In this document: in pieces, positions 28,501 through 60,105 of the stretch
Layout of the letters: every line of letters begins with the position of its first letter
Position numbering within the stretch: position 1 is the first letter of the stretch
Source: Macrostomum lignano
Lineage: Eukaryota
Length of the DNA: 64,000 nt
Assembly: GCA_002269645.1 (NCBI GenBank)
Contig: NIVC01000218.1
Location: 444,911 to 508,910, forward strand
Direction of reading: 5' to 3'
Made by a program: the position numbers and the translations under genes
The notes under the pieces: model-generated
Database searches by the model: none
What the model was told of the DNA's origin: nothing
Seen by the model: the letters and a program-made list of their open reading frames with translations, nothing else

Positions 28501-31500
28501 GAGTAGGGGCAGTGAAGGGAGTAGGGGCAGTGAAGGGAGTAGGGGCAGTGAAGGGAGTAGGGGCAGTGAAGGGAGTAGGGGCAGTGAAGGGAGTAGGGGC
28601 AGTGAAGGGAGTAGGGGCAGTGAAGGGAGTAGGGGCAGTGAAGGGAGTAGGAGCAGTGAAGGGAGTAGGGGCACTGAAGGGAGTAGGGGCATTGAAGGGA
28701 GTAGGAGCAGTGAAGGGAGTAGGGGCACTGAAGGGAGTAGGGGCATTGAAGGGAGTAGGAGCAGTGAAGGGAGTAGGGGCATTGAAGGGAGTAGGGGCAG
28801 TGAAGGGAGTAGGGGCAGTGAAGGGACTAGGGGCAGTGAAGGGAGTATGGGATACATATTCGTGAACGTCATGCAAATAGGTTAATATTTTCATCTAAAA
28901 GCCAGCCAAAAAGCCAGAGTGGCTCGTGCAATTTTTCCTCCATCTAAACCGGAAACGAGAAATTTTAGCGTTTGTTAAAATTCGGGGGTTTGCAATAATT
29001 GCATTGCGGCCTGTGCGTGGGCGGTTCGGGATGACAAACGCTTGCAGTTGTTAGTGGGGCTGAGTGGGCGTTGGCGTGCTGGGGTGAATCATGCCCATAT
29101 TTGCAAATACTGCATTGGATTCACATGGACATCTGTCTGTGCGTACCTGGACTGGGGTAAGCACAATAGTTCAGAAATTTCATTTCCAATTGCTAGAAGT
29201 TAAAAAGTATCGTTAGTTTCGAAAGTAAATTATATTTAATTCAATTAGTTATAAGAAACGGGTACATTATAAAGTATAAACTGTAAAGTACTAGGAAATT
29301 CAAGGAAATTATGTTGTGTGCAGCAAGCCCTATAGTCCATGAGAGATCATGGATGACTTTCTCTGTCCTGCGCTGTTAAGCTCTAGATAGTCTAGATAGC
29401 GTTTGAGCATATCAACCCCAGCAGTGCGTCTGGGGGTTCTTCACCCAGAAGGGCAATCTGCATGATTAATTTCATTTGTTCAGCCCAGTCGGTCTCATTC
29501 ATCACATTCGCCAGACTGGTCAGCTATGCTTGTGTTGCATTAATTTTTTCTGGTGCACTTTTGTAAAATGAAAAATGCTCCCAGCATCGGTCCTGCCTTC
29601 GGAAAAATGTCCAACAGTCAGACTAATAATAGCGGTGAAGATGGACATATTTTTGGTGATTCTGTCTCTAACTTGGTGTCCTTATCTCAGATTGGGTGTC
29701 TTTATCTCAGATTGGGTGTCCTTATCTTAGATTGGGTGTCTTTATCTCAGATTGGGTGTCCTTATCTCTAACTTGGTGTCCTTATCTCAGATTTGGTGTC
29801 CTTACCTCAGATTGGGTGTCCTTATCTCAGATTGGGTGTCTTTATCTTAGATTTGGTGTCCTTATCTCAGATTGGGTGTCCTTATCTCAGATTTGGTGTC
29901 CTTATCTCAGATTGGGTGTCTTTATCTTAGATTTGGTGTCCTTATCTCAGATTGGGTGTCCTTATCTCAGATCGGGTGTCCTTATTTCAGATTTGGTGTC
30001 CTTATTTCAGATTTGGTGTCCTTATCTCAGATTTGGTGTTCTTATCTCAGATTTGGTATCTTTTGAGTAGTACTTTTGAGCGTTCCATGTACTATTGAAA
30101 ATAGTGGATTTCATTTACATCTTCATGCATTATTGGACCGTGAGCTGATAACAGACACAGCCTTGTTCCATCCGAGCGTTACAAACTTGAATTGGCTACT
30201 ATTATAGTTAATCTACACTCAATATCATTGTAGGAGTTGAATAGTCAGAGAATCCTGTCAATATTGGTTGCCTTTGGCACCCGGGATGCTTCAATTTAGC
30301 CAAGAAGCTCAAGAAGCTATACCTGAATCGTAAAGTATGAGAATAATAGTAATTCATGTAATTCACAACAGCACTTCCTTTATTAGGTACAGACGCTTTA
30401 TTGTGTGGAACAACAATGAAACGAATTAATAGTTAATGGAATTTAATAATAGGTTTCATTATGTACTTAATAAATATTGAATAGAACTTATATCCAGTCA
30501 TAAAACTTGATAGAGCAGTGCGTACTTTTTTGAGGAGAGGTCGACTATATACTCCCAAAGTACTCCAAAGTACGTACGTGCATTCAGTTAGTAAATTTAC
30601 AATAACGTTTACCCTCCTACCTGTATTAGGTCGTAGTGGCATTGCTTCGCGATTATACATCTCGCTTTCACGGTCCCTAGCCATGCCCATCCCCCTCTAC
30701 TGTCTCCCCTCTCTCCCTCTCTCCCCTCACTCACTTTCTCCCCTTACTCACTTTCTCCCCTCACTCACTTTCTCCCCCTTTCTCCTATCTCCCTCTCTCT
30801 ACCTGTCTCTCCCTCTCTCCTATCTCCCCCTCTCTCCTATCTCCCCCTCTCTCCTATACCCCCTCTCTCCTATCTCCCCCTCTCTCCTATCTCCCCCTCT
30901 CTCCTATCTCCCCCTCTCTCCTACCCCCCCTCTCTCCTATCTCCCCCTCTCTCCTATCCCCCCTCACTCACTTTCTCCCCTCACTCACTTTCTCCCCTCA
31001 CTCACTTTCTCCCCCTTTCTCCTATCTCCCTCTCTCTCCCTGTCTCTCCCTCTCTCCTATCTCCCCCTCTCTCCTATCTCCCCCTCTCTCCTATACCCCC
31101 TCTCTCCTATCTCCCCTCTCTCCTATCTCCCCCTCTCTCCTATCTCCCCTCTCTCCTACCCCCCTCTCTCCTATCTCCCCTCTCTCCTATCCCCCCTCTC
31201 CTATCTCCCCCTCTCTCCTATCTCCCCCTCTCTCCTATCCCCCTCTCTCCTATCTCCCCCTCTCTCCTATCTCCCCCTCTCTCCTATCCCCTCTCTCCTA
31301 TCCCCCTTTCTCCTATCCTCCCTCTCTCCTATCCCCCCTCTCTCCTATCCCCTCTCTCCTATCCCCCCTTTCTCCTATCCTCCCTCTCTCCTATCCCCCC
31401 TCTCTCCTATCTCCCTCTCTCTCCTATCTCCCCCTCTCTCCTATCCTCCTCTCTCCTATCCCCCCCTCTCCTATCTCCCCCTCTCTCCTATCCCCCTCTC

Positions 31501-34331
31501 TCCTATCTCCCCTCTCTCCTATCTCCCCTCTCTCCTATCCCCCTCTCTCCTATCTCCCCCTCTCTCCTATCTCCCCCTCTCTCCTATCTCCCCCTCTCTC
31601 CTATCCCCCTCTCTCCTATCTCCCCCTCTCTCCTATCTCCCCCTCTCTCCTATCTCCCCTCTCTCCTATCTCCCCCTCTCTCCTATCTCCCCCTTTCTCC
31701 TATCCCCCTCTCTCCTATCTCCCCCTCTCTCCTATCCCCCCTCTCTTCCTGTCTCCCCCTCTCTCCCTGCCTCCTCTCTCCCTTTATCCCCTCTCTCCTT
31801 GTCTTCCCTCTGTCTTTTCTCCCCACCCTCTCCTACTTCAGTTCTCCCTCTACAGTGACTGTGAATGGAAGCACCCGTAATTAAGAAAAAATGCAAATAT
31901 TAAAATAGACCCGAAGCACAGTAGAATTCCAGCATAGTAAGTTACGAAAAAATTTTCTGTTTGTCCAAAATAGGGGCACCCAGCAACTAAAAGAAGACCA
32001 GCTTTTATCTGCTGTCTCTCTCAGGTGGTATCTGCTGTCTCTCTCAGGTGGCATCTGCTGTCTCTCTCAGGTGGTATCTGCTGTCTCTCTCAGGTGGTAT
32101 CTGCTGTCTCTCTCAGGTGGTATCTGCTGTCTCTCTCAGGTGGTATCTGCTGTCTCTCAGGTAGTATCTACTGTAGATGTCACCGATGAATTTTATAAAT
32201 TAATGCACTTTAACACCATTCTCCGTTCTCAGTTCCCGAAATGGCTCGCGTCACCAGTCACATCGTCAAGGAAGTAAACGGCGGCCTCTACTTGTGGTTC
32301 GACGCCGAGGGCAGAGAACCGACCTGGGATCTGCCTGTGATTGAAGAGATTGAAACTGGCGAATGGTCTTTCAAGGGTCGAACTAGGCACTTTGTTAACT
32401 GCCATATCGAGGTAAGAGAACCGCTAGTTTTCTTTCTAACGAATGTACATTGTGAATGTACATTAAACAGCCATAGATTCCTTTCTTTGCTCTTATCTCG
32501 TTCCTGATTGGCTGGCTGTTTAGCCTCGTGTAGACCGCTAGGCATCAAATGTACACCTTAAATATCGCCGTGTTCTTTCTTTATCTGTTGAGGCAGAGTG
32601 GCTCCGACGCCAACCCCCAAAGCGCATGATGTATGCACACTGCGACTGCCAGACTATAAAGACTATATTCCTGCTAATAGCAAGGACTGCTCAAGTAGGA
32701 CGGGAAAACTGTTTCTAAGAAAATTTCAGAAGGCAGGTTTTTCCAAAGAAATATATTACGAAGATAGGCTTTCATGCTTTCAGCACAAAAATTGTTATTG
32801 CTGTTGATAGGAAGCCGACCCAGTTTTTATCTTTTTTACATGTTGTGCCTTTCTTTATAGCTCTATAGATATTATAAAATTACAATTATGTTTATTATGT
32901 TTATGTTTATGTTTATGTTAAATTATGTTTATAATAGGATTCTACGTTAGGATTCTACGTTAATTTTACATGGTTTTACGTAAATCTATTATATCTAAAA
33001 ATCCTAAAATACATGGCACAGCTCGACTCATTAGTTTTATGAATCTGTTTCATCATCTCTATTATACATATTCTTACAGTCAGCTATAAAGAAACCTAAA
33101 ATTTTCCAAGAAACGTTTTCCCATAAACCCGAAAAATCACGACACCGAAAGCACTTCCCATCATAAACCCGAAATATCATACACCCGAAATATCACAAAC
33201 CCGAAATATCATAAACTCGAAATATCATAAACCCGAAATATCACAAACCCGAAATATCATAAACCCGAAATATCATAAACCCGAAATATCATAAACTCGA
33301 AATATCATAAACCCGAAATATCACAAACCCGAAATATCATAAACCCGAAAAATCACAACTCCGAAAACCAAAATAGCATTGCCCATCATAAACCCGAAAT
33401 ACCATAAACCTTATTTCGGGTTTGTGATATTTCGTGTTTGTGATATTTCGTGTTTGTGATATTTCGGGTTTATGATATTTCGAGTTTATGATATTTCGGG
33501 TTTATGATATTTCGGGTTTATGCTATTTCGGGTTTATGATATTTCGGGTCTATGATATTTCGGGTTTGTGATATTTCTGGTTTATGATATTTTGGGTTTA
33601 TGATATTTCGGGTTTATGATATTTCGGGTCTATGATATATCGGGTTTATGCTATTTCGGGTTTGTGATATTTCGGATTTATGATGGAAAGCGCTTTTCGG
33701 AGTTGTGATTTTTCGGGTTTGTGATGCCCTCCCCCTTGAATAGCAGCTGCTTTGCTGCCATTGTAAACTAACTGCTTTTTGGCTGGCTGAGACAAGTATA
33801 GATACAATAAGCTGAAACTCAATAACCTACTCACAGGAGATCAACCAGAACGGAGCAGACGTGGGCCACCTGACAACGGTGCACGATCCCAGCTTCTTTG
33901 GCGGCACAGATTTGCGCTACATCTTCCGCTGGTGGAGCAGCTTTCTATGGCAGAAGTTCTCAGCCACCTGGAAGCCGTGCACCGAGCCGGGGAGTCGTCA
34001 CCAGGCAGTCATGGTGCTGCACGAGAAGACCTACTTGTTTGGAAAGAATGTCAAGTTTGTTGAGATGACGGTCAGAGCCAACCAGGTGAGGTCAGGGTGT
34101 GGGAACTGTTTAGCTTTCTATTATGCTGCTAAATAAATCGATAAACCTATATAAATTGGTTAACTGATTGCTGTTGACTGTTTTTATGTTCCACAGATGA
34201 TTTGCAACTAAATATATGGATTTACTGATGAACTGATTGATTGATTTATTGATTGATTGATTAATTGATTGTCTGATTGATTTATTAATTGATTGATTAA
34301 TTGATTGATTAATTGATTGACTGATTGACTA

Positions 34332-34366
<35 letters not shown>

Positions 34367-34409
34367 TGATTGATAGGATTGTTTGATTAATTGATTGACT
34401 GATTGATTA

Positions 34410-34440
<31 letters not shown>

Positions 34441-34485
34441 TCATTGATAGGATTGATTGATTTATTGCTTGACTGATTAATTAAC

Positions 34486-34518
<33 letters not shown>

Positions 34519-34919
34519 TGATTGATAGGATTGATTGACTAATTAATTGACTGATTAATTAATTGATTGATTGATTGGTTTATTGGTTGGATTGATTGAT
34601 GATTGATTGTCTGATTGATTAATTTATTGATTGACTGATTAATTAACTGATTGATTGATTGGTTGGTTGATTGATTGGATTGATTGATAGGATTGATTGA
34701 CTAATTAATTGACTGATTAATTAATTGATTGATTGATTGGTTTATTGGTTGGATTGATTGATGATTGATTGTCTGATTGATTAATTTATTGATTGATTGA
34801 TTAATTGATTGACTGATTGATTGATTGATTGATTGATTGATTAGTTGGTTGATTGATTGATTGATTGACTGATTGACTGGTTGATTGGTTGATTGATTGA
34901 TTGATTGATTGATTGATTA

Positions 34920-34951
<32 letters not shown>

Positions 34952-34985
34952 GTTGATTGATTGACTGATTGATTGATTGATTGAC

Positions 34986-35027
<42 letters not shown>

Positions 35028-35091
35028 GTTGATTGATTGACTGATTGATTGATTGATTGACTGATTAATTGATTGATTAATTGATTTATTA

Positions 35092-35168
<77 letters not shown>

Positions 35169-35565
35169 CTGATTGATTGATTGCCTGATTGATTGACTAA
35201 CTAATTCCGAACGATACCCGCAGCTCGGTCCCGCCGTGGTGTACCTGGAGTTCGACAGCCTATTCGGCAAAGGCGTATTCCTGCACTGCGTGACCCCGGT
35301 GGAGCCGCTGCTGCTCCGAGTCCACCACAGCATCTACATGCAACGCTGGGTGCCCAACATCGTGGCCACAGTCTACCTGAATGGCGAGGCTTTCCAATTC
35401 GAGCGCGACATCATGATCTGGAACAACAAAGAGTTCAAGGACAAGCCGGTGCTGGCCAAGTCCACCGAGGACTCGCTGATGGTGCAGCACAGGCGCTGGT
35501 ACTCGCAGTTCTATTCGGAGAGTTCTCCGACTATTGAATCGCTGCGCGACTCGAAGGACTGGTAG
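22550..35565 (+). CDS. nvd: Rieske-domain cholesterol 7-desaturase (Neverland/DAF-36 family), 5 exons, 431 aa
   Basis: Exons 22550-22877, 25130-25327, 32233-32411, 33837-34085, 35224-35565; all GT-AG and phase-compatible (1296 nt). N-terminal TM segment; PPVYPNGWY; Rieske CPHFGANM...CPFHGW; [12 protein letters not shown] iron-binding motif; [11 protein letters not shown]; RRWYSQFYS. Confidence 0.95.
23122..23600. repeat. 28-29 bp intronic minisatellite (GGCCCAGCAACTGAGGATCTGGGAGGCT)n
   Basis: About 17 copies in nvd intron 1. Confidence 0.93.
24515..25110. repeat. ~29-bp minisatellite (CTATAACAGTCTGGGGGTAGGGTGGCTGC)n with a duplicated ~90-bp unique block
   Basis: Array units plus the block TACGCTCG...CCCGATCCCC present at ~24568-24655 and ~25023-25110. 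Confidence 0.85.
25766..27310 (+). CDS. Divergent intronless alpha-tubulin (514 aa) nested in nvd intron 2
   Basis: [13 protein letters not shown] start, [60 protein letters not shown]; one uninterrupted ORF; candidate AATAAA at 27641. Confidence 0.96.
27807..28850. repeat. 18-bp G-rich minisatellite (AGTGAAGGGAGTAGGGGC)n
   Basis: About 58 near-perfect copies; explains the GSEGSR/LPLLPS ORFs. Confidence 0.97.
29680..30060. repeat. 20-bp minisatellite (GTGTCCTTATCTCAGATTGG)n
   Basis: About 19 copies. Confidence 0.93.
30690..31835. repeat. Polypyrimidine CT-rich low-complexity repeat (CTCTCCTATCTCCCC)n
   Basis: 1.1 kb almost free of G; the 446-aa ORF here is an artefact. Confidence 0.95.
32006..32170. 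repeat. 23-bp minisatellite (ATCTGCTGTCTCTCTCAGGTGGT)n
   Basis: About 7 copies ending ~60 bp before the nvd exon 3 acceptor. Confidence 0.9.
33122..33725. mobile_element. Foldback-type element made of inverted arrays of a 17-bp unit
   Basis: (AAACCCGAAATATCATA)n at 33122-33410, then its reverse complement (TATGATATTTCGGGTTT)n at 33413-33725; unique terminal motifs are also mirrored (CCCGAAAAATCAC...CCATCATAAA). Confidence 0.75.
34220..35200. repeat. (GATT)n microsatellite, ~1 kb
   Basis: Fills most of nvd intron 4 up to ~25 nt from the exon 5 acceptor. Confidence 0.97.
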
Positions 35566-39133: not shown

Positions 39134-42100
39134 TTAGCATTTGTGCCCAATGTGAGAAGCGACAACGTTGCTGCTTCTGCGGCAGATATGCGACTTTGCT
39201 TGCTGCTGCTGCTGTTGTTGTTGCTGGAGCTGGGCCTGCTGCTGTCTCAGCTGCTGCGGCTGCTGCTGCTGGCACATCCCGCCGAGCGATACAACAGCAG
39301 CTGTGGTCGGCTGGCAGTGATGGTACAGCTGCTGACTCTGTGCCATCGCCTGCTGCTGTTGCGGCTGCTGCTGAGTCGGTGGCGGAGGCGGCGGAGGCCG
39401 ATAACCCTGGCTCACTCCGGCACTGCAGCCGGGGCCTCCTCCAGCGCCAAGCATCCCCGTTGTTGACCAGCTGCAGTCGTCAACCGCGCCAGCTGTTGCA
39501 GCTCTGGCAGGCGTCATCGCGGCGATTCCGCCGGACCCACTGACGGCGCTGACTGGCGCGGCGCTGCTGCTGCTGACAGTCTGGCAGGCGGAGTGGCAGG
39601 ACATCACCCGTTCTGCTTCGGCCTCGCGACGTCTGGCCTCGTTTTTTAGGCGCTCCGTGTCGGCCCTGATGCGCTCGGCTTCAGACCGGAGCCGCTCCGT
39701 CTCGGCCAGCATCCAGGCCAGCCGGTCTTCGCTGTCGCGCACCCGCAGCATGGCGGCCTGCGGGATGGATGATGGTTGACGCGCGTGGTCTTTGAGATGC
39801 GCTGCTGAGCTGGTATTGACATATGAAGGGTGTGATTTGAAGACCAGAAAAAGCAAGATACAAAAGACATATGAATAGCCACCCAAAAGTACATAGAAGC
39901 ACTTTGTTTTGTTATTGATTAGATGAATTTTTCTGATTGTTTTTTGTATGTTTGTAATTATCTATTAGCTTATTTCATGGCTTAGTTGGTTGCTTGGTTG
40001 TCTAATTTCTTGGTTGCTTGGTTGCTTGGTTGCTTGGTTGCTTGGTTGCTTGGTTGCTTGGTTGCTTGGTTGCTGGGTGCTTGGTTTCTTGGTTGCTGGG
40101 TGCTTGGTTTCTTGGTTGCTTGGTTGCTTGGTTGCTTGGTTGCTTGGTTTCATGGTTGCTTTGTTGCTTGGTTGCTTGGCTGCTTGGTTGCTTAGTTGCT
40201 TGGTTGCTTGGTTGCTTGGTTGCTTGGTTGCTTGGTTGCTTGGTTGCTTGGTTGCTTGGTTGCTTGGTTGTTTAATTTCTTGGTTGCTTTGTTGCTTGTT
40301 TGTTTGGTTGCTTCGTATTCAGCCTTAAATAACAGCTAGACTTCACGGGCCTGTGACAACCTAAATTAATAAACTTAAAAAAGGACCTTATGCGGAACCG
40401 AGCATTGTCCAAACGGCAAAAAATAACGATTAATACGAGCGTTTGGGGTTACGGCCCAGCGGCTTCTCACCTTTAGTCCCCACTCGCCTTTCAGCGACTC
40501 ATGGAGTATTCATTAACCTCCGACACGTCCGAGGCTGCTGGAGCACCAACCGAGGTTGGCACCGCGGCCCAGCCGGACATTCGCAACACTGGAACCCCCG
40601 GTGCCTCTCAATCTGCCGGAGTGGCTGGACAAGACAGCGGACCTCAGATTTCGAAAAAGAAGGCCCGTAGCATTGCTCGCTACAAAGCCTTTCTCCAGCG
40701 CAAAGCGGAGGAACGGAGGAATGCGAAAGCCGCCCCTCCGGCCACCTCTGAGGAGGGTGCCGGTAACTCTGCGAAACCCGCGGAGGAGCCGACATCCGAC
40801 AAGGGGGTGGACCCCGCGCGCCGGTCTGATGCGTCAGCTGCCGCCGAAGCTCCTGGTGCGGCTGGCCCCTCCCGTGACCGGACCTCTGCCCGTGTGGAAG
40901 CTCCCAAGGCCGTGGAGGGATCCAAAGCGGGGGGCGCTGGCCAAACCACAAAGCCGAAGCGAACCTACGCGGCCATGGCCAAAAGGCAGCCGGCCCTGGT
41001 TATCCAAGGCCAGGAGACGCCTCTTACGGCCGAACAGCTCGACCTTATCTGGCGCAGGTTGGACTCCCACCTGGTCAAGATGGCCTTGAGCCGCACTACT
41101 ATTCGAGTCCAAAAGACGAAAGTCGAGGACCAAGCCCTCTATATCCAGCCCACCGACAGCCAGTCAGGACAGCAGCTCCTCGAGCTGCTGAAAACCTTCG
41201 ACTGGGGTACGGAGCTGGAGAACCTGTTCATCTACAGGGAGGACGAGCGACCCCGGACACACCGGCACCGTGCCTGGATCCCGGCTCGCAGCTGCATCAC
41301 CAAGGCCGACGAGCTGCGTCACCTGCTAGTGGCTTCCAACCCAGAGCTACCGGCCAACGGTGTCGTAGTTCACGAGACCATCTCCAAGCCGGGCGGAGAC
41401 GGTTTCACGGCTATTCATGGACTGTCGGATAGCTGGATGCTCCGCTACCCGGATATGTCCATCATCTCTGTCGGGCTGTTGCAGATTCAGCTCTTTAGCT
41501 TTGATTCTGACGCCACCCGCCCACCGCCCCCGGAGAAGCGTAAGCGGGCAGTCGGGGGCTCTGCCGGGCGGAAACGCCCAGGAAAAGAAGCTCCCGGTCG
41601 TCACGACCCCTCCGAGGACGTGGACCCTGTCAGAGGGAAAGCCGCGAAAGCTGCAGCAACAGGCGGACGTGGAAAGGGCCGGAAACCCGCCCGGAACACT
41701 ATCCGCTCTGGTCTGACTCAGCGCGCGAAGCAGCTGCTGGACACCGCCAAGGCCCCCAACCGCAGCCACCCCCAGCCCAGTGTTACCACTGCGGCCCCCC
41801 CGGAAAACCGGGCCGAGAGCGAGAATGCCGCCCAGGTAGCGACCTCGCCCTCGACCATGGAATCCATCCGGGAGGAGCCCATGGAGCTGGAACCTGGAGC
41901 TATCGGCGAGGCAGAAGAGGCAGCTCTCCTGCACAACTCGCCTTGAGCCGGCAGGAAGCTGCGCGGACCACTCGTGGAATTCCCGGAGTGGACATCCTGC
42001 AGCTTAACCTGCACCACTGCATCGCGGCCTCGACCAACCTGATGAGGGTGGCAAACTTTGCGAAACCGGGCATCATCCTACTCCAGGAGCCCTGGACAAA

Positions 42101-45100
42101 GAAAGGTAAGATTCCGAATATTCCTGCTGGTTTTGACTGTTTTCAAGACCCCCAAAACCCCAGAGCAGCCATTTTCGTATCTACCCACCTCAAAGCTTGG
42201 TACAGACCGGACCTCTCTGACAGAGACCTCTGTGTCATTCAGTCCAACCACATTATCACCAACCGCACGGCCATCATCGCCTCGATCTATATCCCTGGCG
42301 ATGGCCCCGCGGTTCCACCCAACCTCACCTCCCTCGTGGACTACTGCTCTAACCGTAGGTTCGAGCTGCTGGTGGCGGGCGACATCAACGCTCACCACAC
42401 CCACTGGGGCAGTAATACTTCCAATAGCAGAGGCGAGGAACTCCTTGCTTACATCTGCACCACCAACACTGTGTTTTGCAACATTGGTGGAACCCCCACC
42501 TTTGACAACGGGCGATGGACGGAGGCCCTCGACGTTACCCTCGTCTCCCATGGCTTGGCTCCTTTAGTCAAGGACTGGGAGGTGTGGGACGAAGAGGAGT
42601 CTCTGTCTGACCATCGCTTCGTTCGTTTTCGTTTGCAATCCTCTTGCCCCAAGCCTCACATTCTGTGGAAAAGGAACGTCCGGAACACTGATTGGACGGC
42701 TTTCACGGAAACCCTGAAATGCCAGACAGATCAGCTGACTACCGTCGCTCCAACCACCTGTCAGGAAGTGGATGACCTTGCAGACTTGCTCAGCAAGACC
42801 GTCCTGACAGCCCATGAGGCTTCCTGTCCTCTTAAAGCCTACAAAGGCAAAAAATCCGCCCCCTGGTGGCACCCGGCGCTCGGATCCCTCCGGCGCAAGG
42901 CAAAGTGCCTCCAACGGAAAGCTCGCAAGAGCAAGGACCCAGCTGACCTGGCCGCCTATCAAGAAGCGATCCGCGACTTTAAGCGTGAAACCAGGAAAGC
43001 CAAGTCCGACAAATGGCGCCAATACTGCGCGGAGTTAGAAGGCACCCGCCCTACTTCGCGCGTAGTTAAGGCTCTCACCCTCGACAAAATGTCAAAGCTC
43101 TCAGTCATTAAAAGACCGGACGGCCGGCTCGCTGAGAACCCTGGGGAATCGCTGGAAATTATGCTTACCAGCTCTTTCCCACGTGCCGCACCGCAGCTAG
43201 GCCCACCGGACCACTCTCCGGGCGGACAGATCCTGGCTTCGACCATCATTACTAGAGAGAGGACGGCTCGCGCCGCAAAATCCTTCTCTCCTTTCAAGTC
43301 CCCGGGTCCTGACAACATTTATCCTGCCTTCCTTCATGAGGCAGTTAAAAATGACAGGTTTCTCGGCCTCCTCTGCAACCTCTTCAAGGCCAGAATTACC
43401 CTCGGGTATGTGCCAAAAGCCTGGCAAGAGGCTACGGTAGTCTTCATACCCAAGCCAGGAAAGGGAGACTATCAGTCTGACGTCCTTCTTCCTCAAACTG
43501 ATGGAACGGCTAGTGCTCTGGCGCCTTCTCCTCGTTGAGCTGAGGTACTCCCCGCTCTCCCCTAATCAGCACGCCTTTCGTCCTGGACGTTCCATCGAAA
43601 GTGCGCTGCACGCCATTGTCGACAAGCTGGAGCGCGCCGTGCTTGGCAGTGGATACGCGCTGTCGCTTTTCCTCGACATTGATGGTGCTTTTAACAATGT
43701 GCTCTTTGAAGCCTTTAAGCGAGCCCTGGAATCCCGGGGCACGCACGAGCACCTCACCCGCTGGATCATGTACATGGTCTCCCATCGTACTGCCACCTCG
43801 CACCTCCTGGGACACTCACGCTCCGTGGAAGTCCAGAAAGGCGGACCGCAAGGTGGAGTCCTCAGCCCGATCCTCTGGAACTTAGTCATGGACGAGCTGC
43901 TTTGCAGCCCGCATCCGGACCCTGTTCAGAAGGTCGGCTATGCGGACGATGTTACCACCACTGTGGCTGGACCATCGCCCGCGGTCCTCAGGGACCTCCT
44001 TCAAGCCTTCATCCACCGTGCCGAGCGCTGGGCACATAGCTGCGGTCTCAGGTTCTCTGAGTCTAAAATCGTGGCTATCATGTTCACCAGCCGCCGAAAC
44101 TGGAGGATCGAACCGCTCTCCCTCTACGGCAAACCTGTTGCCATGGAGAAACAAACTAGATGTCTGGGCGTCACCCTCGACCACAGGTTGAGCTGGACCC
44201 CGCACGTCCAAACTAAAGCCCGCAAAGCTCTCGCGACTCTCGCGCAGATCCGCAGAGCTTTCGGTGCTACCTGGGGCCTCACCCCCGCCGCCTCTGGTGG
44301 ATTTACACTGCCATTGTTAGACCGGCCATCTCCTTCGCCGGCTTCATTTGGAACAGTGCCCTAGAGGTGAAAGGGGTTCTTGAGGTTTTAAATAGGGTGC
44401 AAGGCCGCGCTTGTCGAGCTATCATGAGCGCGGCTCCCTCAACGCCCTTCGCTGGCATGAACTCCTTCTTGGACATTCCCCCCTCGACCTCTTTGTTAGA
44501 GGGGAGGCTATGAAAACCACCCGTCGTCTGCTTGACGCGGGTGTCCAAATCCAGAAGCAGTTTGCCTTCAGAAAGCGGAACCTCCGGCCGCATGGCGACC
44601 TCAGCCTGCGAGACCTGGAAGCAGCGAGAGGCCTGCTGACCCTCTCGGACGGAATCCCGTCCACGCTCTGCCCCCCGCTCAAATTCAAACCAGCATTCCA
44701 CCACGCCATGAAGCGAGAGACAACTGGAAACCCCATGAAATCCACTGCTTCACTGACGGGTCCCAAATCAACTCCGCCTCTGGATACGGCTACTGCATCG
44801 TGTCTGGAGGGAGAACTGTGGCGACCTTCTCCCAACACACCGGCACCTGCTCCACCGTCTTCCAGAACGAAGTTCTCGCCATCAGCTCCTGCGCCATGGA
44901 GCTGTACAATCAGCGCGTTTGGGGGAAGGAAATTACCCTCCACTCGGACAGTCAAGCGGCGCTTCACGCCCTTGAGCGCACCACCACCTGCTCGCGTACA
45001 GTCCTCGACTGCATCGGGCAGCTCAACCGCTTAGGCGCCTCCAACAAGGTGTCCCTAAGGTGGATCCCCGGGCATTCGGGCCACCCCGGCAACGAGCTGG

Positions 45101-48100
45101 CCGATCGCCTGGCCAAGGCTGGCTCGACCGGTTCTTTCACTGGTCCCCTGCCCGTGGCCCCCACCCCCATCGCCGTTGTCACCACTCGGATCAACCAGTG
45201 GGTGGCTTCTAAGCACAGGGAGAGGTGGGCTAACGCACCCGACTGCCGACAATCCCGCGCGGCTGTCCCCTGTCCCTCCTCCGCCCTACGCAGGGCCCTG
45301 CTTGGACTCAACCGCAGGGACATCAGGGCGGTGACCATGGCCCTCTCGGGTCATGGCTGCTTTGCCAGGCAGGCATCGTTACCTCCAGGAGAAAATCCGC
45401 AGTGAGGAATGCCCTTTCTGCCTCTCCGGTGTCGAGAATGCGGAGCACTTCATCTGTGAATGCCCCGCCTTTACTCAGGACAGACTCACCTACCTCGGCC
45501 CAAACCCGGACCTCTCCGACGTTTTCAGGCCCGAGAATCTCTGCCAGCTCGTCCGCTACCTAAGGGCTACCGGGCGAGCGACAATCCACCTCCTGGACTC
45601 TCCGGAGGGGGACCGCGCTGCGGACGCCGGCGCCACCGGAACTCCCTGCGCGACACCGCAGCACTAGCTGCCCGTGGTCGCCAGGGGTTAGCGAAATGGG
45701 CGGCAACGCCTCCTCGCTGTTTCCGGACGCACGGAGCCCCCTGCAGCTAAGTCAAGTAAAGTAAGTTATTGATTAGATGAATTTTTCTGATTGTTTTTTG
45801 TATGTTTGTAATTATCTATTAGCTTATTTCATGGCTTAGTTGGTTGCTTGGTTGTCTAATTTCTTGGTTGCTTGGTTGCTTGGTTGCTTGGTTGCTTGGT
45901 TGCTTGGTTGCTTGGTTGCTTGGTTGCTTGGTTGCTTGGTTGCTTGGTTGCTTGGTTGCTTGGTTGCTTGGTTGTCTTATTGCCTTGTTGCTTGGTTGCT
46001 TGGCTGTCTAATTGCTTGGTTGATGGTTGCTTGGTTACTTGGTTGTTTAATTTCTTGGTAGCTTTGTTGCCTGTTTGTTTGGTTGCTTCGTATTCAGCCT
46101 TAAATAACAGACTTCACGGGCCTGTGACAACCTAAATTAATAAACTTAATCAAGGACCTTATGCGGAACCGAGCATTGTCCAAACGGCAAAAAATAACGA
46201 TTAATACGAGCGTGAAATTCAACAAAGAACTCTTTAGACACGCGTGTAAAAAGTCGACATTCTTGACTGACCAGCTAAGAAACACCGAGCCTCTCACCTG
46301 TCTCTCCAAATTGGCTGCCTCAACGGCCAGATTTGAGCAGACCGGCTGTCCAACGTTGAACGACTGCGGCTCGCACTGGTACCCGCTGCCCCCGACTCCC
46401 CCGCCGCCGCCGCCAGAAACAACTGTTGCAGACTGTACAGCAGCGGGGAACGGAGCCCCAGATGCCATGGACGCCGCAGGATAGGGATCCATGGCCGCAG
46501 CTGGCTGATACTGCTGCTGCTGTTGCGATTGACATCTAAACTGCGGCTGCTGCGGCTGCTGACGTTGCTGCATCAGCGGCTGCTTCCCCGGGTCCGGTAG
46601 TCTCGGTCGCGAGCAGCTGGACGCTGACCGGCCAACGCGCCGACTGACCCCGCCGCCAGTCGGTCCGCCGCTACCACCGTTGAGGCTTCCTCCGCCGCCG
46701 GCGCGCATCTCCGTCAGTAGGCGGACGGCTTCTTCGACCGAGCGGCCAACCGGCATGTCGCTGATGCTGGCCTGGCAGATCCGGCGATCGGGACCGACTA
46801 GGAAAGTTGCTCTGGGGAGGACAGCGACGAGGGGAGAAATTTGGACGATTTTTTGACTACTTGCAGGCCTGTAACACGTATTCTTCTCATCCATCTCAAT
46901 ATCCACTCCGCGTCCCTCTTTTCATGCTTTCTGCAACTTATGGTACATTTCCGCTGCATTCCCAGCCCGATTCTTCAGACTCAGGATTCTACGGGGTTCG
47001 ATTCCCTGCAAATTGACCAAGGACTTGCCATCCAAATTGTCGTTAATGAAGGCCAAAAAAAGTGTACATACCTGACAGTAGGAGATACTTGGGGGGCAAC
47101 TTTACACCATGTGTGTGTGCCTTCATCATTCCCACCTGTACGAGGCCCCAGCATCCTAATATAACAGTATACTTCATCATCCCCACCTGTACGAGGTCCC
47201 AGCATCCTAATATAACAATAGACCTAATCATTCCCACCTGTACGAGGCCCCAGCATCCAAATATAACAGTATACTTCATCATCCCCACCTGTACGAGGCC
47301 CCAGCATCCTAATAACAGTAGACTTCATCATTCCCACCTGTACGAGGCCCCAGCATCCTAATATAACAGTAGACTTCATCATTCCCACCTGTACGAGGCC
47401 CCAGCATCCGGCGCCAGCACTCCGTAGGCCTCGGCAATCTCGTGAGTCCGGTCGCTGAGCAGAACCGGAAATCCGGCGGCCGCCTGTTCGGCAGTCCAAC
47501 CGAGGCCGCGCTCGCTTTTAGGCGCCTTCAGCCAGGCCAGGTGGGTGAAAGCCGAGTCAGTTGAGCAGCAGACTGTGCTGCACTTCAACTGCTCGGTTAG
47601 TTCGGTCCATTTGTCGGCAAATTGTTGCACTTCGGTTGGGCAAACGAATGTGCTGCAGTAAAAGTTGATTTTTTTAATATCAGTTTTATTTCTAGGAATC
47701 AATGACACGTAAGACCAAAATTAAAAAAGCAAATATTAAAATCAATTGGGTTTAAGATTGGACGGACTGGCGTATCAAAATTTAAATTTATAAAACTAAC
47801 CTAGTCGAATCACTTAATCCCAAAACTAGTTGGCCTTCACGTGAAGGCCACGCGGACTTCCGTGAGGCAGAGATGAAAGGCAGGGAAATATGAGCAGGTA
47901 TATCGAATAAAGTTCTGAGACACGGAGAGGAATACCAAAGAGATCTCCAAGACACGGAGATGGAAATCAAGGAGACTTCCAAGAACCGAGATGGAAATCA
48001 AAGAGACTTCCAAGACACCGAGATGGAAATCAAGGAGACTTCCAACACACGGAGATGGAAATCCAGGAGACTTCCAAGACACCGAGATGGAAATCAAGGA

Positions 48101-48539
48101 TACTTCCAAGACACGGAGATGGAACTCAAGGAGACTTCCAAGACACGGAGATGGAAATCCAGGAGACTTCCAAGACACGGAGATGGAAATCAAGGAGACT
48201 TCCAAGACACGGAGATGGAAATCCAGGAGACTTCCAAGACACGGAGATGGAAATCAAGGAGACTTCCAAGACACGGAGATGGAAATCAAGGAGACTTCCA
48301 AGACACCGAGATGGAACCCAAGGAGACTTTAATGTGTACTCTACATGCATCGATTTAAAAGCCTCAACCTTCAAAATAAACAAATGAACTCACAAGTCGG
48401 ATGGATAAAAGACCAGCAGCAGGTACTGAGCGTCTCGCATCGCGTCCTCTAACGTAAAATCGGATACGATTTCGCCATTTTTCACTGCCTGGCTGCGAAA
48501 CGGTGGCGCCAAATCGCCAGGCTGTAGGAAGTGCGACAT
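39134..48539 (-). CDS. Peroxiredoxin (AhpC/Prx1-type) domain fused to a ~340-aa Gly/Gln/Pro-rich, coiled-coil-containing C-terminal extension; 4 exons, ~515 aa
   Basis: Minus-strand exons 48539-48394, 47652-47389, 46811-46298, 39757-39134; all GT-AG and phase-compatible (1548 nt). Splicing rebuilds LVFYPSDFTFVCPTE (peroxidatic C53), [32 protein letters not shown] (catalytic Arg) and [14 protein letters not shown]. Exons 1-3 are high confidence; joining exon 4 is inferred from phase and the acceptor CCCGCAG. Confidence 0.85.
39911..40442. repeat. Left copy of a host-intron direct duplication flanking the LINE (contains (GGTTGCTT)n)
   Basis: GTTATTGATTAGATG...AATACGAGCGT; recurs at 45765-46213. 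Confidence 0.92.
40501..41946 (+). CDS. LINE ORF1 (gag-like/nucleic-acid chaperone), 481 aa
   Basis: Intact ATG-TGA ORF upstream of the endonuclease ORF; basic, low-complexity termini. Function inferred from position. Confidence 0.75.
   Translation: MEYSLTSDTSEAAGAPTEVGTAAQPDIRNTGTPGASQSAGVAGQDSGPQISKKKARSIARYKAFLQRKAEERRNAKAAPPATSEEGAGNSAKPAEEPTSDKGVDPARRSDASAAAEAPGAAGPSRDRTSARVEAPKAVEGSKAGGAGQTTKPKRTYAAMAKRQPALVIQGQETPLTAEQLDLIWRRLDSHLVKMALSRTTIRVQKTKVEDQALYIQPTDSQSGQQLLELLKTFDWGTELENLFIYREDERPRTHRHRAWIPARSCITKADELRHLLVASNPELPANGVVVHETISKPGGDGFTAIHGLSDSWMLRYPDMSIISVGLLQIQLFSFDSDATRPPPPEKRKRAVGGSAGRKRPGKEAPGRHDPSEDVDPVRGKAAKAAATGGRGKGRKPARNTIRSGLTQRAKQLLDTAKAPNRSHPQPSVTTAAPPENRAESENAAQVATSPSTMESIREEPMELEPGAIGEAEEAALLHNSP
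41943..45610 (+). pseudogene. LINE ORF2 (endonuclease-reverse transcriptase-RNase H), disrupted
   Basis: Frameshifting deletion at ~43470 removes the PKSYRP-type motif before ISLTSF; further frameshifts near 44290, 44480, 44700-44750 and 45370. Confidence 0.88.
45765..46213. repeat. Right copy of the host-intron duplication flanking the LINE
   Basis: Same unique sequence as 39911-40442, with a shorter and differently mutated (GGTTGCTT)n tract. Confidence 0.92.
47121..47408. repeat. 51-bp tandem repeat containing the peroxiredoxin exon 2 end and 5' splice site
   Basis: Six copies of CTTCATCATTCCCACCTGTACGAGGCCCCAGCATCC...; on the minus strand GATGCTGGGGCCTCGTACAG|GTGGGA. Confidence 0.92.
47930..48330. 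repeat. 32-bp minisatellite (CCAAGACACGGAGATGGAAATCAAGGAGACTT)n
   Basis: About 12 copies in peroxiredoxin intron 1. Confidence 0.93.
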
Positions 48540-51759: not shown

Positions 51760-54700
51760 CAAGCGCCAACAACAAAGCGCAAAAAGCCGTCAGCGTCGCC
51801 CTCGCCTTCGTTTCAATCTTCGCCTTCGCCGCAGGCGCAGCAACAGCAGCAGCAGCCGCAGCAGTACATTGGCGTGACCTCCGGCGCCGCGGCGGCTGCA
51901 GCCGCTGCCCAGCAGGAGCGCCAATCATTCGCTCTGCTAAGCGCCGAAACTCTCCGCCTATGGTGCGACTCGGCCGGAGCCCAGCTGGCCAATCGGGACG
52001 CCATGCTCTGCCTGGCCCAGGAGGTCACCTACCAGACTCGGCACCTCATCACCAAGGCTGCCCAACGGATGCGACATTCGGCGCGCAGGCGATTAACTGT
52101 CGACGATGTCGATTCCGCTTGCTTAGCGTCGAAGTCGCCGCGTTTGATTGGTCATCTGGCGCCACCAGCGGAGCTGCTAACCTGCCCGACGCCTGTACGA
52201 CTTCCGGCGGAAGCTGTGGCTGGCGACCCGGACTTGGCTGGTCTTCGCTACCTGCCGGAGACTTGCTTAGATCCGCTGCTGCTGCTGCGCAGAGCTCGGG
52301 TTGGCAGCGCTGATCCGTCAGTATCGGCGCCTCTGTCTATACTGCGCGTGTGCAACTCTTCTACCAACAGTTTGGACTCTGTTAATACTGGCAGTTTAGC
52401 TTCATCTACGGTCACTCTGACCCAGGCTGAAGCTGCCTATAGCGCTGAGATTCGTCGACTCCTACTACTACGTCGTCCGTTAAATAGTCCAATCCAGTCG
52501 GTTTCTTCGTCTTTGAAGCAGCCGCAGCAGCAGCGAGTGAAGCAGCAACCAGGCAATTCTAAGCAGAGTCCGCAGCAGCAGCCGCCATTCCATCACCTGC
52601 TCCGCCACCTTGCCAGCACGGACACTCCCGCCCTCGGCCGGATCCTTTCCCGCCTACTGCAGTTCCTTGGCCGGCTATGTCGTCGATTCGGCCACTCGCC
52701 CGTTCTGCTGTCTCGCTGCCTACGCTGTCTGCAAGCTTGCGCTAGTAATCCTCATCTGACTTGGCCAGCCTCCGAGTTCGCCATCGCTGTTCACCTGCTC
52801 TCCTGCCTGCTGGCCACCACTCCGCCTTGTTCAGTCTGGCGACCAGCCGAGGCTGTCGATCTGCAAGAGGCCGCCGCGACACTTCTAGCAAGACTATCGC
52901 CTAGTCGTGGCAGACAGTCGAATCCGTTGCTTCGTCGGCTGCTGTTATCGTCCGATGGTTCAGCCGCGGCTTCCGGGCTGCAGTCAGCTGCAGAGATGCC
53001 GCCCTTGCTGGACAGAAGCTGGCCAGCTGTGCGCAAGTCGCTGCCTCGCCTGCTGGCGCAATTGACGCCGGCGATTGTCGGCCAGACTGCTGATGTGGAG
53101 TCCGTGGCCTCCGCCGTCAGGCTTCGCTGCAGACTGTTGGCCTATCTGAGGCGATTGTCGATGGAATCTGTTGCCAGGCGCCAGGCTGATAACGAATCGC
53201 TGTCAGATGAAGAGGAAGAAGAGCTTCCGGTTGCTGCCGATGACGTCGAATGCGATTCGGAGAGCTGCCGTGGCGCAGGCGAAGATTGTCGTGATTGGCG
53301 CTTGGCCGCTAGCGTGTACAGCGCGTTGGCATCGAGCGACGGGTTCGCTTCGATGCTCGACCTGCCGCTCTATCAGTTTCGCAGACTCTGCGCTGCTTCA
53401 TCAGTGAACTTCGGCCTGATGTCGCAACAGCGACAACTTCAGCAGGGCCCGGATCTGCTCAGCTCTGTTGCCGCAGCTGATAGCATCGCCGAGAATGTTG
53501 ACGGCCTGTTGATGCTGTTGGAGCAGCAACAGCAGCAGCAGCAGTTTCTGCAGGAGCAGCACCTGAGCCAGGCTCTACTGCCGATCGATATTGGCGCAGA
53601 TGTCGATGTGATCAGTCCAGAAGCTGCTTGCTCGCCGAACTCTCGACCGCCAGTGCTGGAGCCGGCGATGCCTCAGCTGGGCCTGATGCAGGACGACCCG
53701 GTGCCCTCCCAGCTGCCTCTGCTAAGAGACGATGATGATGTCGTTGAAAGTCGAGGCGATTTACCAGTGCCGGACTCCGATGTCAGCTGCATGGCGGACC
53801 TGCTTAATTTCGGAGGTTTGTCCGCATTTTTATAAATATTTTGTCTAAATATGCACTTAGTATGCTTAAACAAGTACTTTTACTGCGTCTAGGTATGTAC
53901 TTTTGCAGTGTCAGGACTACAGAACATGCATTTTTAATCTGTCTAGATATGTAGTTTTGTTGTGTCAGGACATTTAGTTTTTTTGTGTCAGGACATGTAG
54001 TTTTTTTGTGTCAGGACATGTAGTTTTTTGTGTCAGGACATGTAGTGCTGTGTCAGGACATGTAGTTTTGTTGTGTCAGGACATGTAGTGCTGTGTCAGG
54101 ACATGTAGTTTTGTTGTGTCAGGACATGTAGTGCTGTGTCAGGACATGTAGTTTTGTTGGGTCAGGATATGCAGTTTTGTTGTGTCAGGACATGTAGTTT
54201 GTTGTCTCAGGACATTTAGTGTTGTGTCAGGACTTGTACTCGTAGTTTTAAAGTGTTGAAGGCAGTTTTTACATTTCACATAAAAGTTATAGTGTAACTT
54301 TTCTCTCTATACTACTTACTATCCGCAGTAGTAGAGCAGTAGTGACACAAATGAACATCTATTCCCAATTTTGCAGCTCTGTCAGCCGACCAGTGCTCGG
54401 AGGCCTCCACGTTGCCCGCCATCAGCGACCGTCCGCTAACGCCGCCTCTGGCATCGGAGGAGCCGCCTCTGCGGCTGGCTGCCGAAGCGTCGCCGCCGCA
54501 GCAGCAGCAACAGCAAAAGCAGAAGCAGACACAGCAGCCGCCAATGTTTGAATTAATCTCTCCGCCTCTTCCACAGCCGCCGGCGCCTCATCCTCAGCCT
54601 CAACCGCCGCCTCCGCCCTTGTTCAGCATCGACACCGACGATCTGGAAGTATTCGATTATCCTAGTAGAAGACCGTTGCAACGTCAGAAACGAATTGTTA

Positions 54701-54981
54701 TTCGATTATTGTCGAATAACTCTGGCGCTAAAATGCCTACTCATACTACTCATAGTGGCGAGTCAAGTGCCTTGCCTAATTGTCAGCAGCCTGCGGCTGG
54801 CACCGAGTCGTCAGAGTTCTATCGATTGTTTCAGCAGTTGAAATGGCGATTCGGCTGGGGCATCGGCCGGGCCGCCGTGGCGTCGGTTAGTCGCGGCGGC
54901 ATTGCAGGGGCTTTCAATAGCGGAATTCCCGGAGACAGCGACCTCGTGGCAGTGTTGCCGGATTTTGCCTACCCATTGTGA
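51760..54981 (+). CDS. TAF6L: TAF6-like RNA polymerase II/SAGA subunit (TAF6L-like), 5' end not located
   Basis: Large exon 51760-53815 (acceptor CCAG; donor G|GTTTGT) plus a probable phase-1 exon 54377-54981. H4-like histone fold (SAETLRLWCDSAG...LAQEVTYQTRHL...MRHSARRRLTVDDV) and a TAF6 C-terminal helical region (LSRCLRCLQACASNPHL). TAF6L rather than TAF6 is my judgement from remembered sequences. Confidence 0.75.
53960..54232. repeat. ~23-26 bp minisatellite (TGTGTCAGGACATGTAGTTTT)n
   Basis: About 11 copies in the putative last TAF6L intron. Confidence 0.88.
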
Positions 54982-58499: not shown

Positions 58500-58759
58500 A
58501 AGTCTTACAATCTAGCTCTGGTTTCGTTACACTTTGTAGCTGCATTTTATTATTCCATTTCATTGCTTTCATTTCAAATTTCGATATTATTGGAACTGGA
58601 AGTAGAAAGTTATTTTGTGTGAGCGAAATATCAGCATGCATGATAATATGTCAGCTTCATCTAAATTATTAATTATATTCGGCTTCTTGCTTTGAAGTTT
58701 AGCTTCATGAATGATTTAAGTCCGAGGTTTGCTCCTCAGGTCCCGAAATTGTCTCATTT

Positions 58760-60105
58760 TAGTTACTGAAATTGTGTCACTTCAGATACTGAAATTGTGT
58801 CACTTTAGATACTGAAATTTTGTCACTTTAGTTACTGAAATTGTGTCACTTTAGTTACTGAAATTGTGTCACTTTAGTTACTGAAATTGTGTCACTTTAG
58901 ATACTGAAATTGTGTCACTTTAGATACTGAAATTGTGTCACTTCAGATACTGAAATTGTGTCACTTCAGTTGCTGAAATTGTGTCACTTTAGATACTGAA
59001 ATTGTGTCACTTCAGTTACTGAAATTGTGTCACTTTAGATACTGAAATTGTGTCACTTTAGATACTGAAATTGTGTCACTTCAGTTGCTGAAATTGTGTC
59101 ACTTCAGTTGCTGAAATTGTGTCACTTCAGTTACTGAAATTGTGTCACTTCAGTTACTGAAATTGTGTCACTTTAGATACTGAAATTGTGTCACTTTAGA
59201 TACTGAAATTGTGTCACTTCAGTTACTGAAATTGTGTCACTTCAGATACTGAAATTGTGTCACTTCAGATACTGAAATTGTGTCACTTCAGTTGCTGAAA
59301 TTGTGTCACTTCAGTTACTGAAATTGTGTCACTTCAGTTACTGAAATTGTGTCACTTCAGTTGCTGAAATTGTGTCACTTCAGTTGCTGAAATTGTGTCA
59401 CTTCAGTTGCTGAAATTGTGTCACTTCAGTTACTGAAATTGTGTCACTTCAGTTACTGAAATTGTGTCACTTCAGTTACTGAAATTGTGTCACTTCAGTT
59501 GCTGAAATTGTGTCACTTTAGATACTGAAATTGTGTCACTTTAGATACTGAAATTGTGTCACTTTAGATACTGAAATTGTGTCACTTTAGATACTGAAAT
59601 TGTGTCACTTTAGTTACTGAAATTGTGTCACTTCAGATACTGAAATTGTGTCATTTCAGATACTGAAATTGTGTCACTTTAGATACTGAAATTGTGTCAC
59701 TTCAGTTGCTGAAATTGTGTCACTTCAGTTGCTGAAATTGTGTCACTTCAGTTGCTGAAATTGTGTCACTTCAGTTACTGAAATTGTGTCACTTCAGTTA
59801 CTGAAATTGTGTCACTTCAGTTACTGAAATTGTGTCACTTCAGTTACTGAAATTGTGTCACTTCAGTTGCTGAAATTGTGTCACTTTAGATACTGAAATT
59901 TTGTCACTTCAGTTACTGAAATTGTGTCACTTTAGATACTGAAATTGTGTCACTTTAGTTACTGAAATTGTGTCACTTCAGATACTGAAATTGTGTCACT
60001 TCAGATACTGAAATTGTGTCATTTCAGATACTGAAATTGTGTCACCTCAGATACTGAAATTGTTTCACCTCAGATACTGAAATTGTGTCACTTCAGTTAC
60101 TGAAT
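58760..60105. repeat. 23-bp satellite (ACTGAAATTGTGTCACTTCAGTT)n
   Basis: About 58 copies. Confidence 0.96.

Follow-up and report, generated by a model that had tools for sequence, protein, structure and literature searches.

What becomes of a peroxiredoxin (Prx) of the Prx1 type when the C-terminal arm that carries its resolving cysteine is replaced by a long tail of unrelated sequence? This question is raised by the gene Mlig016974g1 of the flatworm Macrostomum lignano, localized on contig NIVC01000218.1 of the assembly Mlig_3_7 (GCA_002269645.1) and analysed here in a window of 64 kb (the whole stretch of DNA, to which all positions refer unless another locus is named). The annotated gene span, from position 39134 to position 48539, coincides with the element delimited in a first-pass annotation made from the letters of the sequence. 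The gene product of 515 amino acids (aa), encoded by four minus-strand exons, is 100% identical to the GenBank entry PAA87757.1 (hypothetical protein BOX15_Mlig016974g1, Macrostomum lignano), and its UniProt name "thioredoxin-dependent peroxiredoxin" was assigned automatically. Judged from its sequence, the protein begins with a divergent peroxiredoxin domain of the Prx1 subfamily (residues 1-173) that has a complete peroxidatic site. Mlig016974g1 is a real, transcribed and selectively maintained gene, and it is one of four copies that represent two recent homeolog pairs derived from one old duplication.

Gene model

Exon 1 (48394..48539) starts with the ATG at 48539-48537 and encodes residues 1-48 and the first two nucleotides of Phe49 (donor GAC TT/gtgagt), residues that form the N-terminal beta-hairpin of the fold, through the motif FYPSD. 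Exon 2 (47389..47652) encodes residues 49-137, of which Arg137 by its first two nucleotides; it opens with cag/C ACA TTC GTT TGC, read as FYPSDFTFVCPTE, and closes with TAC AG/gtggga. It contains the motif FTFVCPTE with the peroxidatic Cys53 (codon 47642-47640), the residues Cys73, Cys77, Cys78 and Trp89, the motif RGLG and a loop insertion of 6 residues. The first part of exon 3 (46703..46811; residues 137-173) starts with ccag/A GCA ACT, which completes the motif YRATF, and ends at LLTEMR; it contains the catalytic Arg137, Cys149 (46777-46775), the second active-site arginine Arg160 (motif PVGRSV) and the last helix of the Prx fold. The second part of the same exon (46298..46702; residues 174-308, donor AGA CAG/gtgaga) encodes a disordered linker rich in Gly, Gln, Ser and Pro (residues 174-295) and the start of a long helix (residues 296-308, 46336-46298). 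Exon 4, preceded by the acceptor ccgcag, opens with the codons GCC GCC ATG. Its first part (39569..39757; residues 309-371) encodes the remainder of this conserved helix, which is rich in Arg, Glu and Ala and possibly forms a coiled coil. Its second part (39134..39568; residues 372-515 and the stop codon TAA at 39136-39134) encodes a disordered region rich in Ala, Gln, Gly and Pro, with a run of seven prolines, followed by a terminal helix rich in polyQ.

All the exon borders follow the GT/AG rule, and the phases rebuild FYPSD/FTFVCPTE over intron 1 and SY(R)ATF over intron 2, the junction between exons 3 and 4 being in phase 0. The four phase-compatible exons proposed in the first-pass annotation are thus those of the deposited protein. 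The Mlig_3_7 annotation was derived from genome-guided RNA-seq and transcript assemblies (StringTie/TACO and a de novo transcriptome) with open reading frames (ORFs) from TransDecoder, and not from ab initio prediction (PMC5730564). Because the GenBank annotation is transcript-based, the junction from exon 3 to exon 4 (46298 to 39757), which had been advanced from the sequence and is spanned by one predicted helix, has transcript support. In both exons, the annotated minus-strand frame is the sole frame that is open throughout.

The peroxiredoxin domain and its active site

The only significant Pfam match of the 515-aa protein is AhpC-TSA (residues 8-148, E=3.9e-24). A sequence search of the PDB aligned Prx1-type chains with residues 5-172 (best E=1.7e-35, about 40-47% identity), and the top matches are all Prx1-4, tryparedoxin peroxidase or AhpC proteins, among them hookworm Prx-1, Schistosoma mansoni Prx1 and human PRDX1-4. 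All these alignments end at residues 170-173, so that homology stops at the motif LLTEMR. The AlphaFold2 model is confident for residues 1-175, with the last Prx helix predicted at 161-174, and Foldseek superimposes it on human PRDX1/2 with a template modelling score of 0.89-0.90 and a root mean square deviation of about 2.0 Å.

The hallmark of the superfamily, PxxxTxxC together with the catalytic arginine, is conserved as Pro46, Thr50, Cys53 and Arg137. The active-site pocket of human Prx2 (hPrx2) is made of Y43, P44, T48, V50, E54, W86, R127 and R150 (PMC10215765), and all eight residues are found here as Y45, P46, T50, V52, E56, W89, R137 and R160. R150 of hPrx2, the second active-site arginine (PVGRSV), therefore corresponds to Arg160. 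The closest relatives of Prx1 type, the motif FTFVCPTE and Arg160 in PVGRSV place Mlig016974g1 in the Prx1/AhpC subfamily. The Prx1/AhpC fold with an intact catalytic set, read from the translated exons in the first-pass annotation, is therefore borne out by the Pfam, PDB and Foldseek matches and by the pocket.

The motif GGLG is modified into RGLG in Mlig016974g1, at a position occupied by Gly in 258 of 268 homologs, and in the family this motif is followed by an insertion of 3-6 residues. The motifs GGLG and the C-terminal YF helix characterize the eukaryotic 2-Cys Prx that are sensitive to hyperoxidation (PMC10215765). Mlig016974g1 has RGLG for the first of these motifs and lacks the YF region altogether.

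Loss of the C-terminal arm

The typical 2-Cys Prx are defined by a resolving cysteine in a VCP-containing arm that reaches the partner subunit. No such arm is present in the 515-aa protein, which has no match to PF10417 (1-cysPrx_C) at E values up to 1; this domain is found in all of the 120 nearest homologs among the matches listed. A regular-expression search detected no VCPxxW motif in any frame of the window. Likewise, a tblastn search with 150 of the 177 canonical Prx C-termini extracted gave noise only, in the window and in the three sister loci, and no remnant of FTDKHGEV is left in the four family genes. A canonical VCP exon hidden elsewhere at the locus, into which exon 3 could have been spliced, was thus found neither in the window nor at the sister loci. 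The absence of the resolving-Cys motif and of the YF helix and the reading of GGLG as RGLG had been noticed from the sequence alone and hold. The conclusion drawn from them holds as well: with an intact peroxidatic site and no resolving-Cys arm, YF helix or GGLG, this protein is not a standard 2-Cys peroxidase.

Membership of the Prx6 subfamily was considered and rejected: the best matches are of Prx1 type and not Prx6, PF10417 is missing, and only the formal 1-Cys mechanism may be common to both. The read-through Prx models that we inspected in other species point to an intron at the position HGEV/CP, and read-through of this common intron is a conceivable origin of the tail.

The tail and its conservation in the family

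The tail (residues 174-515, 342 aa) is rich in Gln, Ala, Gly, Ser and Pro and is joined to the Prx domain within exon 3, in one reading frame; a fusion within a single exon had been put forward before and stands. AlphaFold2 predicts disorder at residues 182-292, with predicted local distance difference test (pLDDT) values below 50, and at residues 378-471. Between them lies a single helix of 76 residues (296-371), whose pLDDT exceeds 90 while that of the regions on either side stays below 50, and a polyQ helix is predicted at residues 474-514. The best heptad register of the long helix places M324, L331, I338 and L345 at position d, and L, T, A, T and A at position a; 38% of its residues are charged. 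These predictions fit a single alpha-helix as well as a weak coiled coil. The helix also has a Pfam match to NRBF2 (E=0.005), which at 16.8 bits stays below the cut-off of 36.8 and was put down to the general resemblance of coiled coils. The Gln-rich disordered parts would suit a flexible tether. A redox sensor or relay function and a condensate-forming or scaffolding tail, suggested in the first-pass annotation, are hypotheses, and the formation of condensates is pure conjecture.

The homeolog Mlig016974g2 (P0273, 517 aa, locus L003) is near-identical to Mlig016974g1 and is likewise accompanied by a TAF-domain gene and a Rieske/KshA_C gene. Between the two homeologs the Prx domain shows 3 synonymous and no non-synonymous changes. 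In the 342 codons of the tail there are 8 synonymous and 4 non-synonymous changes, which gives proportions of synonymous (pS) and non-synonymous (pN) differences of 0.032 and 0.005 and an omega of 0.16 (binomial P=0.002 against the 76% of non-synonymous sites expected under neutrality, n=12 substitutions). By stretch, the synonymous and non-synonymous changes number 5 and 3 in the tail part of exon 3 (residues 174-308), and 2 and 1 in the remainder of exon 4 (residues 372-515). The lone indel of the tail is an in-frame insertion or deletion of 6 nucleotides (GlyGly) in the tail part of exon 3, and the polyQ and polyP runs have equal lengths in both copies. The introns differ by about 3-4% of mismatches, by many indels and by large shifts in length (741 versus 1231 nucleotides for intron 1; 6540 versus 1343 nucleotides for intron 3).

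A second pair of genes, Mlig013099g1 and Mlig013099g2, encodes proteins of 342 aa (P0276 and P0003; loci L004 and L002) from four exons, with introns 1 and 2 at positions identical to those of Mlig016974g1. Their Prx domain, which ends with ...LTELR, is about 60% identical to that of Mlig016974g1. It is followed by a disordered linker of about 100 residues rich in Gln, Ser and Gly and by a long helix (270-336 in the AlphaFold2 model). The extension formed by residues 372-515 of Mlig016974g1 has no counterpart in these shorter proteins. Between the two groups, the Prx domains have a pS of 0.74 (saturated) and a pN of 0.23. Since synonymous sites are saturated and the layout is common to both groups, the fusion predates the old duplication. 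When the tails are compared with each other, the helix alone is similar (composition-adjusted BLASTP, E=3e-7, 23/53 identities, with a gap of seven residues that corresponds to one heptad); its pN is 0.36 and its pS 0.60. The linker is conserved only in composition (rich in Gln, Ser, Gly and Pro) and in predicted disorder. All four family genes keep open frames of 170-342 codons beyond the Prx domain. On these comparisons of sequences, the 342-aa tail is coding and selectively constrained, and the layout is conserved across an old duplication.

The third introns of the two groups are not at the same site: in Mlig016974 the intron is in phase 0, three codons before LRVRDSE, and in the paralog in phase 1, about 23 codons before LQLRDSE (L002 12500/15860). 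Intron sliding, or a loss together with a gain, could account for this difference.

Cysteines and proposed mode of action

Five cysteines are conserved in the four family genes: the peroxidatic Cys53, Cys73 (C70 in hPrx2), Cys78, which is common in invertebrate and bacterial enzymes, and the family-specific Cys77 (codon 47570-47568) and Cys149. The tail of Mlig016974g1 contains 12 cysteines, the paralog tail contains none, and Cys419 is replaced by Tyr in the homeolog. The resolving role proposed for a tail cysteine in the first-pass annotation is therefore not supported, as these 12 residues have no counterpart in the paralogs.

The best explanation overall, to which we give somewhat better than even chances, is that Mlig016974g1 encodes an arm-less Prx1-type protein acting in a 1-Cys mode and positioned or oligomerised through its tail; we infer both the chemistry and the role of the helix. 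Cys53 is presumably still reactive towards peroxide, because the pocket is complete and the domain is under strong purifying selection. Peroxide would oxidise Cys53 to sulfenic acid, as in any peroxiredoxin. With no cysteine offered by a partner arm, the sulfenate would then be resolved by an external thiol, which may be thioredoxin, glutathione or a target protein, and the enzyme would be prone to form mixed disulfides and to behave as a thiol oxidase or a relay. In the yeast protein Tsa1, the removal of the resolving cysteine (C171S) causes a strong rise in mixed disulfides with other proteins (bioRxiv 10.1101/2023.12.13.571451). Because Tsa1 without its resolving cysteine forms more mixed disulfides, a natural arm-less Prx1 may by analogy be biased towards thiol-oxidase or relay behaviour. 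Finally, the helix could zip Prx dimers or oligomers together or dock them on a partner, and the flexible linker would give reach to the catalytic domain.

Several points weigh against this explanation. The long helix may not be a coiled coil but a spacer in the form of a stable single alpha-helix, considering its high proportion of charged residues and the presence of Ala or Thr at many core positions. Effects of the motif RGLG, of the loop insertion and of Cys149 on activity or oligomerisation are possible. The dN/dS test of the tail counts 12 substitutions. No ortholog from another species was found in the databases searched, where the transcriptomes of other Macrostomum species may be missing, and the identifiers of the family genes gave no match to expression or biochemical data in the literature texts and M. 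lignano paper supplements searched.

A more specific version of the arm-less 1-Cys protein would be a trap-like Prx1 thiol oxidase, in which the sulfenate is passed obligatorily to clients recruited by the helix and the linker. The protein would then be a relay that carries its own scaffold, possibly in condensate-like bodies formed through the Gln-rich regions; we regard this version as unlikely.

Alternative explanations

About equally unlikely is an atypical 2-Cys mechanism, where Cys149 (strand beta7) or Cys77 (beside Cys78) would act as resolver in an intra- or inter-subunit disulfide reduced by thioredoxin, the tail being an appendage for localisation or oligomerisation. Both cysteines are present in all four genes, across the old duplication, and beta7 is the strand through which Prx1-type enzymes make their B-type dimers. 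Cys149 occupies moreover the position of a beta7 arginine (R139 in hPrx2) that is Arg in 76% and Cys in 1% of 268 homologs. However, a cysteine at this position is tolerated in two canonical 2-Cys Prx that keep the motif GQVCPANW (P0032 and P0073), and to our knowledge no member of the Prx1 subfamily resolves through the positions of Cys149 or Cys77. On sequence grounds Cys149 is thus a hint and no proof. A replacement of the second active-site arginine by Cys149 was also considered and rejected, since this arginine is present as Arg160 and Cys149 aligns with R139 of hPrx2.

A slightly lower probability is given to the view that the Prx domain is mainly a non-enzymatic module (chaperone, holdase or structural oligomer), with which the tail would build a larger structure or a tissue-specific matrix, peroxide turnover being secondary. 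Chaperone activity and assembly into decamers are known from Prx1-type proteins, scaffold proteins typically combine a long disordered linker with a helical module, and GGLG and YF, which tune the hyperoxidation-dependent switching, are lost. But the pocket is fully retained, and the changes in the Prx domain, none of them non-synonymous between the homeologs and few in proportion between the paralogs (pN 0.23 versus pS 0.74), are those expected if catalysis matters.

It is improbable that Mlig016974g1 is a decaying duplicate that has lost its last exon, and whose translation runs into a former intron or repeat (CAG/GGC microsatellites) to give a functionless tail. The tail is of low complexity and GC-rich, and in places several other frames, also on the opposite strand, are free of stops; outside the helix the paralog tails cannot be aligned; tandem repeats abound at the locus, which also contains an insertion of a long interspersed nuclear element (LINE). 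This view is contradicted by the low omega of the tail, by its in-frame indel and by the constancy of the polyQ and polyP runs while the intronic repeats have changed greatly in length. It is further contradicted by the frames that stay open in the four copies and by the persistence of the helix and layout across a duplication with saturated synonymous sites.

Least probable of all, and rejected here, is an annotation artefact in which exon 4 would be a separate gene of a polycistronic, trans-spliced unit starting at Met311, with the Prx ending in or just after exon 3. In favour of it, polycistronic precursors are numerous among the transcripts of M. lignano (PMC5730564), the ATG lies 6 nucleotides past the acceptor 39757 in a Kozak-like GCCGCC-ATG (39757-39749), and with intron 3 retained the ORF stops 66 codons later. 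But exon 4 of the paralog Mlig013099 has no Met codon, and yet it codes for the homologous helix and is in frame with its exon 3; neither the predicted helix nor the resemblance to the paralog breaks off at the junction (residues 308/309); an independent ab initio model from a different, older assembly (P0002/P0275) joins exon 3 to exon 4 identically; and even if exon 4 were separate, 135 residues of tail would stay fused to the Prx domain within exon 3.

Distribution and comparison with known systems

A HMMER profile search with two full-length proteins of the family against 1.84 billion representative proteins recovered older models of the family genes and no further member. Next in rank (194 bits) is a canonical Prx3-like protein with internal repeats of assembly type, the others are ordinary peroxiredoxins, and the long matches that we inspected are assembly artefacts, read-through models or unrelated fusions. 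A profile restricted to the helix gave no match at E values up to 10, with the low sensitivity of a 74-residue profile in a database of this size. The search for full-length homologs was dominated by polyQ words, so that nothing scored except the four M. lignano models; when the Prx domain was used by itself, the search listed canonical peroxiredoxins of about 195 aa with at most 46% identity, the family itself being absent from the list. The architecture composed of a Prx1-type domain without arm, a linker and a helix is not described in the literature searched.

M. lignano also has a canonical prdx1, for which published quantitative PCR primers encode the motifs RGLFII and FQFTDK (PMC5043416); these primer sequences have no match in the window. 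The family looks like an extra, specialised and lineage-restricted offshoot of the animal Prx1-type enzymes. The first-pass annotation had not recognised the architecture. This judgement holds in that the architecture is undescribed in the literature searched and that no homolog with this tail was recovered by the profile search, though the protein itself was already deposited in GenBank and UniProt under automatic names. Its novelty had nevertheless been overstated, since long tails of unrelated sequence also occur in other, lineage-specific Prx1-like proteins. One example is the "Peroxiredoxin 1-like protein" of the mite Dinothrombium tinctorium (P0243, 405 aa), which like the M. lignano family lacks the resolving Cys and VCP, and in which Prx homology ends at the same helix. 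The mite protein differs by an unrelated tail rich in Lys and Glu and by a degraded active-site region (FFLTCPTE, with GRS lost).

The typical 2-Cys enzymes of the Prx1/AhpC subfamily (human PRDX1-4, S. mansoni Prx1 and Ancylostoma ceylanicum Prx-1) have in common with the family the motif FTFVCPTE, both active-site arginines and the pocket. In contrast to them, the family lacks the resolving cysteine, VCP, the YF helix and PF10417; it has RGLG followed by the 3-6 residue insertion, Cys for Arg at position R139 of hPrx2, and an unrelated tail of 170-342 residues. The yeast Tsa1 C171S and the truncated Prx1-type relay traps resemble the family in that the peroxidatic cysteine is present and the resolving one absent; in such mutants, thiols of other proteins resolve the sulfenate. 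However, the mutants of the Tsa1 C171S type are engineered and keep their arm, whereas in M. lignano the arm is naturally absent and replaced, and this state is kept by selection. The 1-Cys Prx (Prx6) probably use the same formal mechanism, with a single catalytic cysteine resolved by an external thiol, but they belong to another subfamily and keep the folded C-terminal domain PF10417 that the M. lignano family lacks. Other fusions, of Prx with a thioredoxin-like sequence (P0187 and P0272) or with an Mpv17-like sequence (P0189, from the chrysophyte Epipyxis), also consist of an N-terminal Prx1-type domain and a long C-terminal addition. Those additions are recognisable domain-type sequences unrelated to the M. 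lignano tail, and the layout of a linker and a conserved helix occurs in none of the Prx fusions compared.

The redox relays of peroxiredoxins are usually studied through engineered mutants of the resolving cysteine; here evolution appears to have made and kept a protein of this kind. If active, the protein would be a natural test of what a Prx1 does without its arm and of how an appended scaffold directs a peroxiredoxin. The family has so far been seen in a single neopolyploid flatworm. Transgenesis works in M. lignano (PMC5730564), so that tests of localisation and of loss of function should be feasible.

Introns, repeats and neighbouring genes

All three introns of Mlig016974g1 lie, as the gene, on the minus strand. 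Intron 1 (47653..48393), of 741 nucleotides against 1231 in the homeolog, contains a minisatellite with a unit of 32 nucleotides (47918-48329, 12.9 copies). Intron 2 (46812..47388) contains a minisatellite with a unit of 51 nucleotides (47121-47409, 5.7 copies) that starts inside exon 2. This array repeats the last 21 nucleotides of the exon together with the splice donor, which gives about five tandem copies of the donor. The reading frame is kept by the first copy only, and the older ab initio model P0002 was misled there.

Intron 3 (39758..46297), of 6540 nucleotides against 1343 in the homeolog, is inflated by a LINE and a duplicated block. The LINE extends from 40443 to 45839 and is missing from intron 3 of the homeolog. 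Its ORFs (40501..45667, plus strand, thus antisense to the gene) encode ORF1, an APE endonuclease, a reverse transcriptase and an RNase H, in interrupted frames (Pfam Exo_endo_phos_2 E=1.7e-19, RVT_1 E=1.7e-24 and RNase_H E=4.8e-11). On either side of the LINE (39986-40442 and 45840-46213) lies a copy of a duplicated block, which consists of a (TTGGTTGC)n array and a unit of 105 nucleotides, the latter 98% identical between the two sides. This duplication of at least 430 nucleotides is unusually long for a target-site duplication.

Two neighbouring genes of the plus strand are syntenic at locus L003. The first (about 29134-35565) encodes a Rieske/KshA_C-domain protein of 431 aa, which is a Neverland-like oxygenase by its domain content, and the second (about 51760-54981) a TAF-domain protein of 886 aa. 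The 64 kb of the window are dense with minisatellites and hold about 25 large arrays, most with units of 15-35 nucleotides; the largest arrays are localized at 1671-4553, 58745-60104 and 60759-64000.

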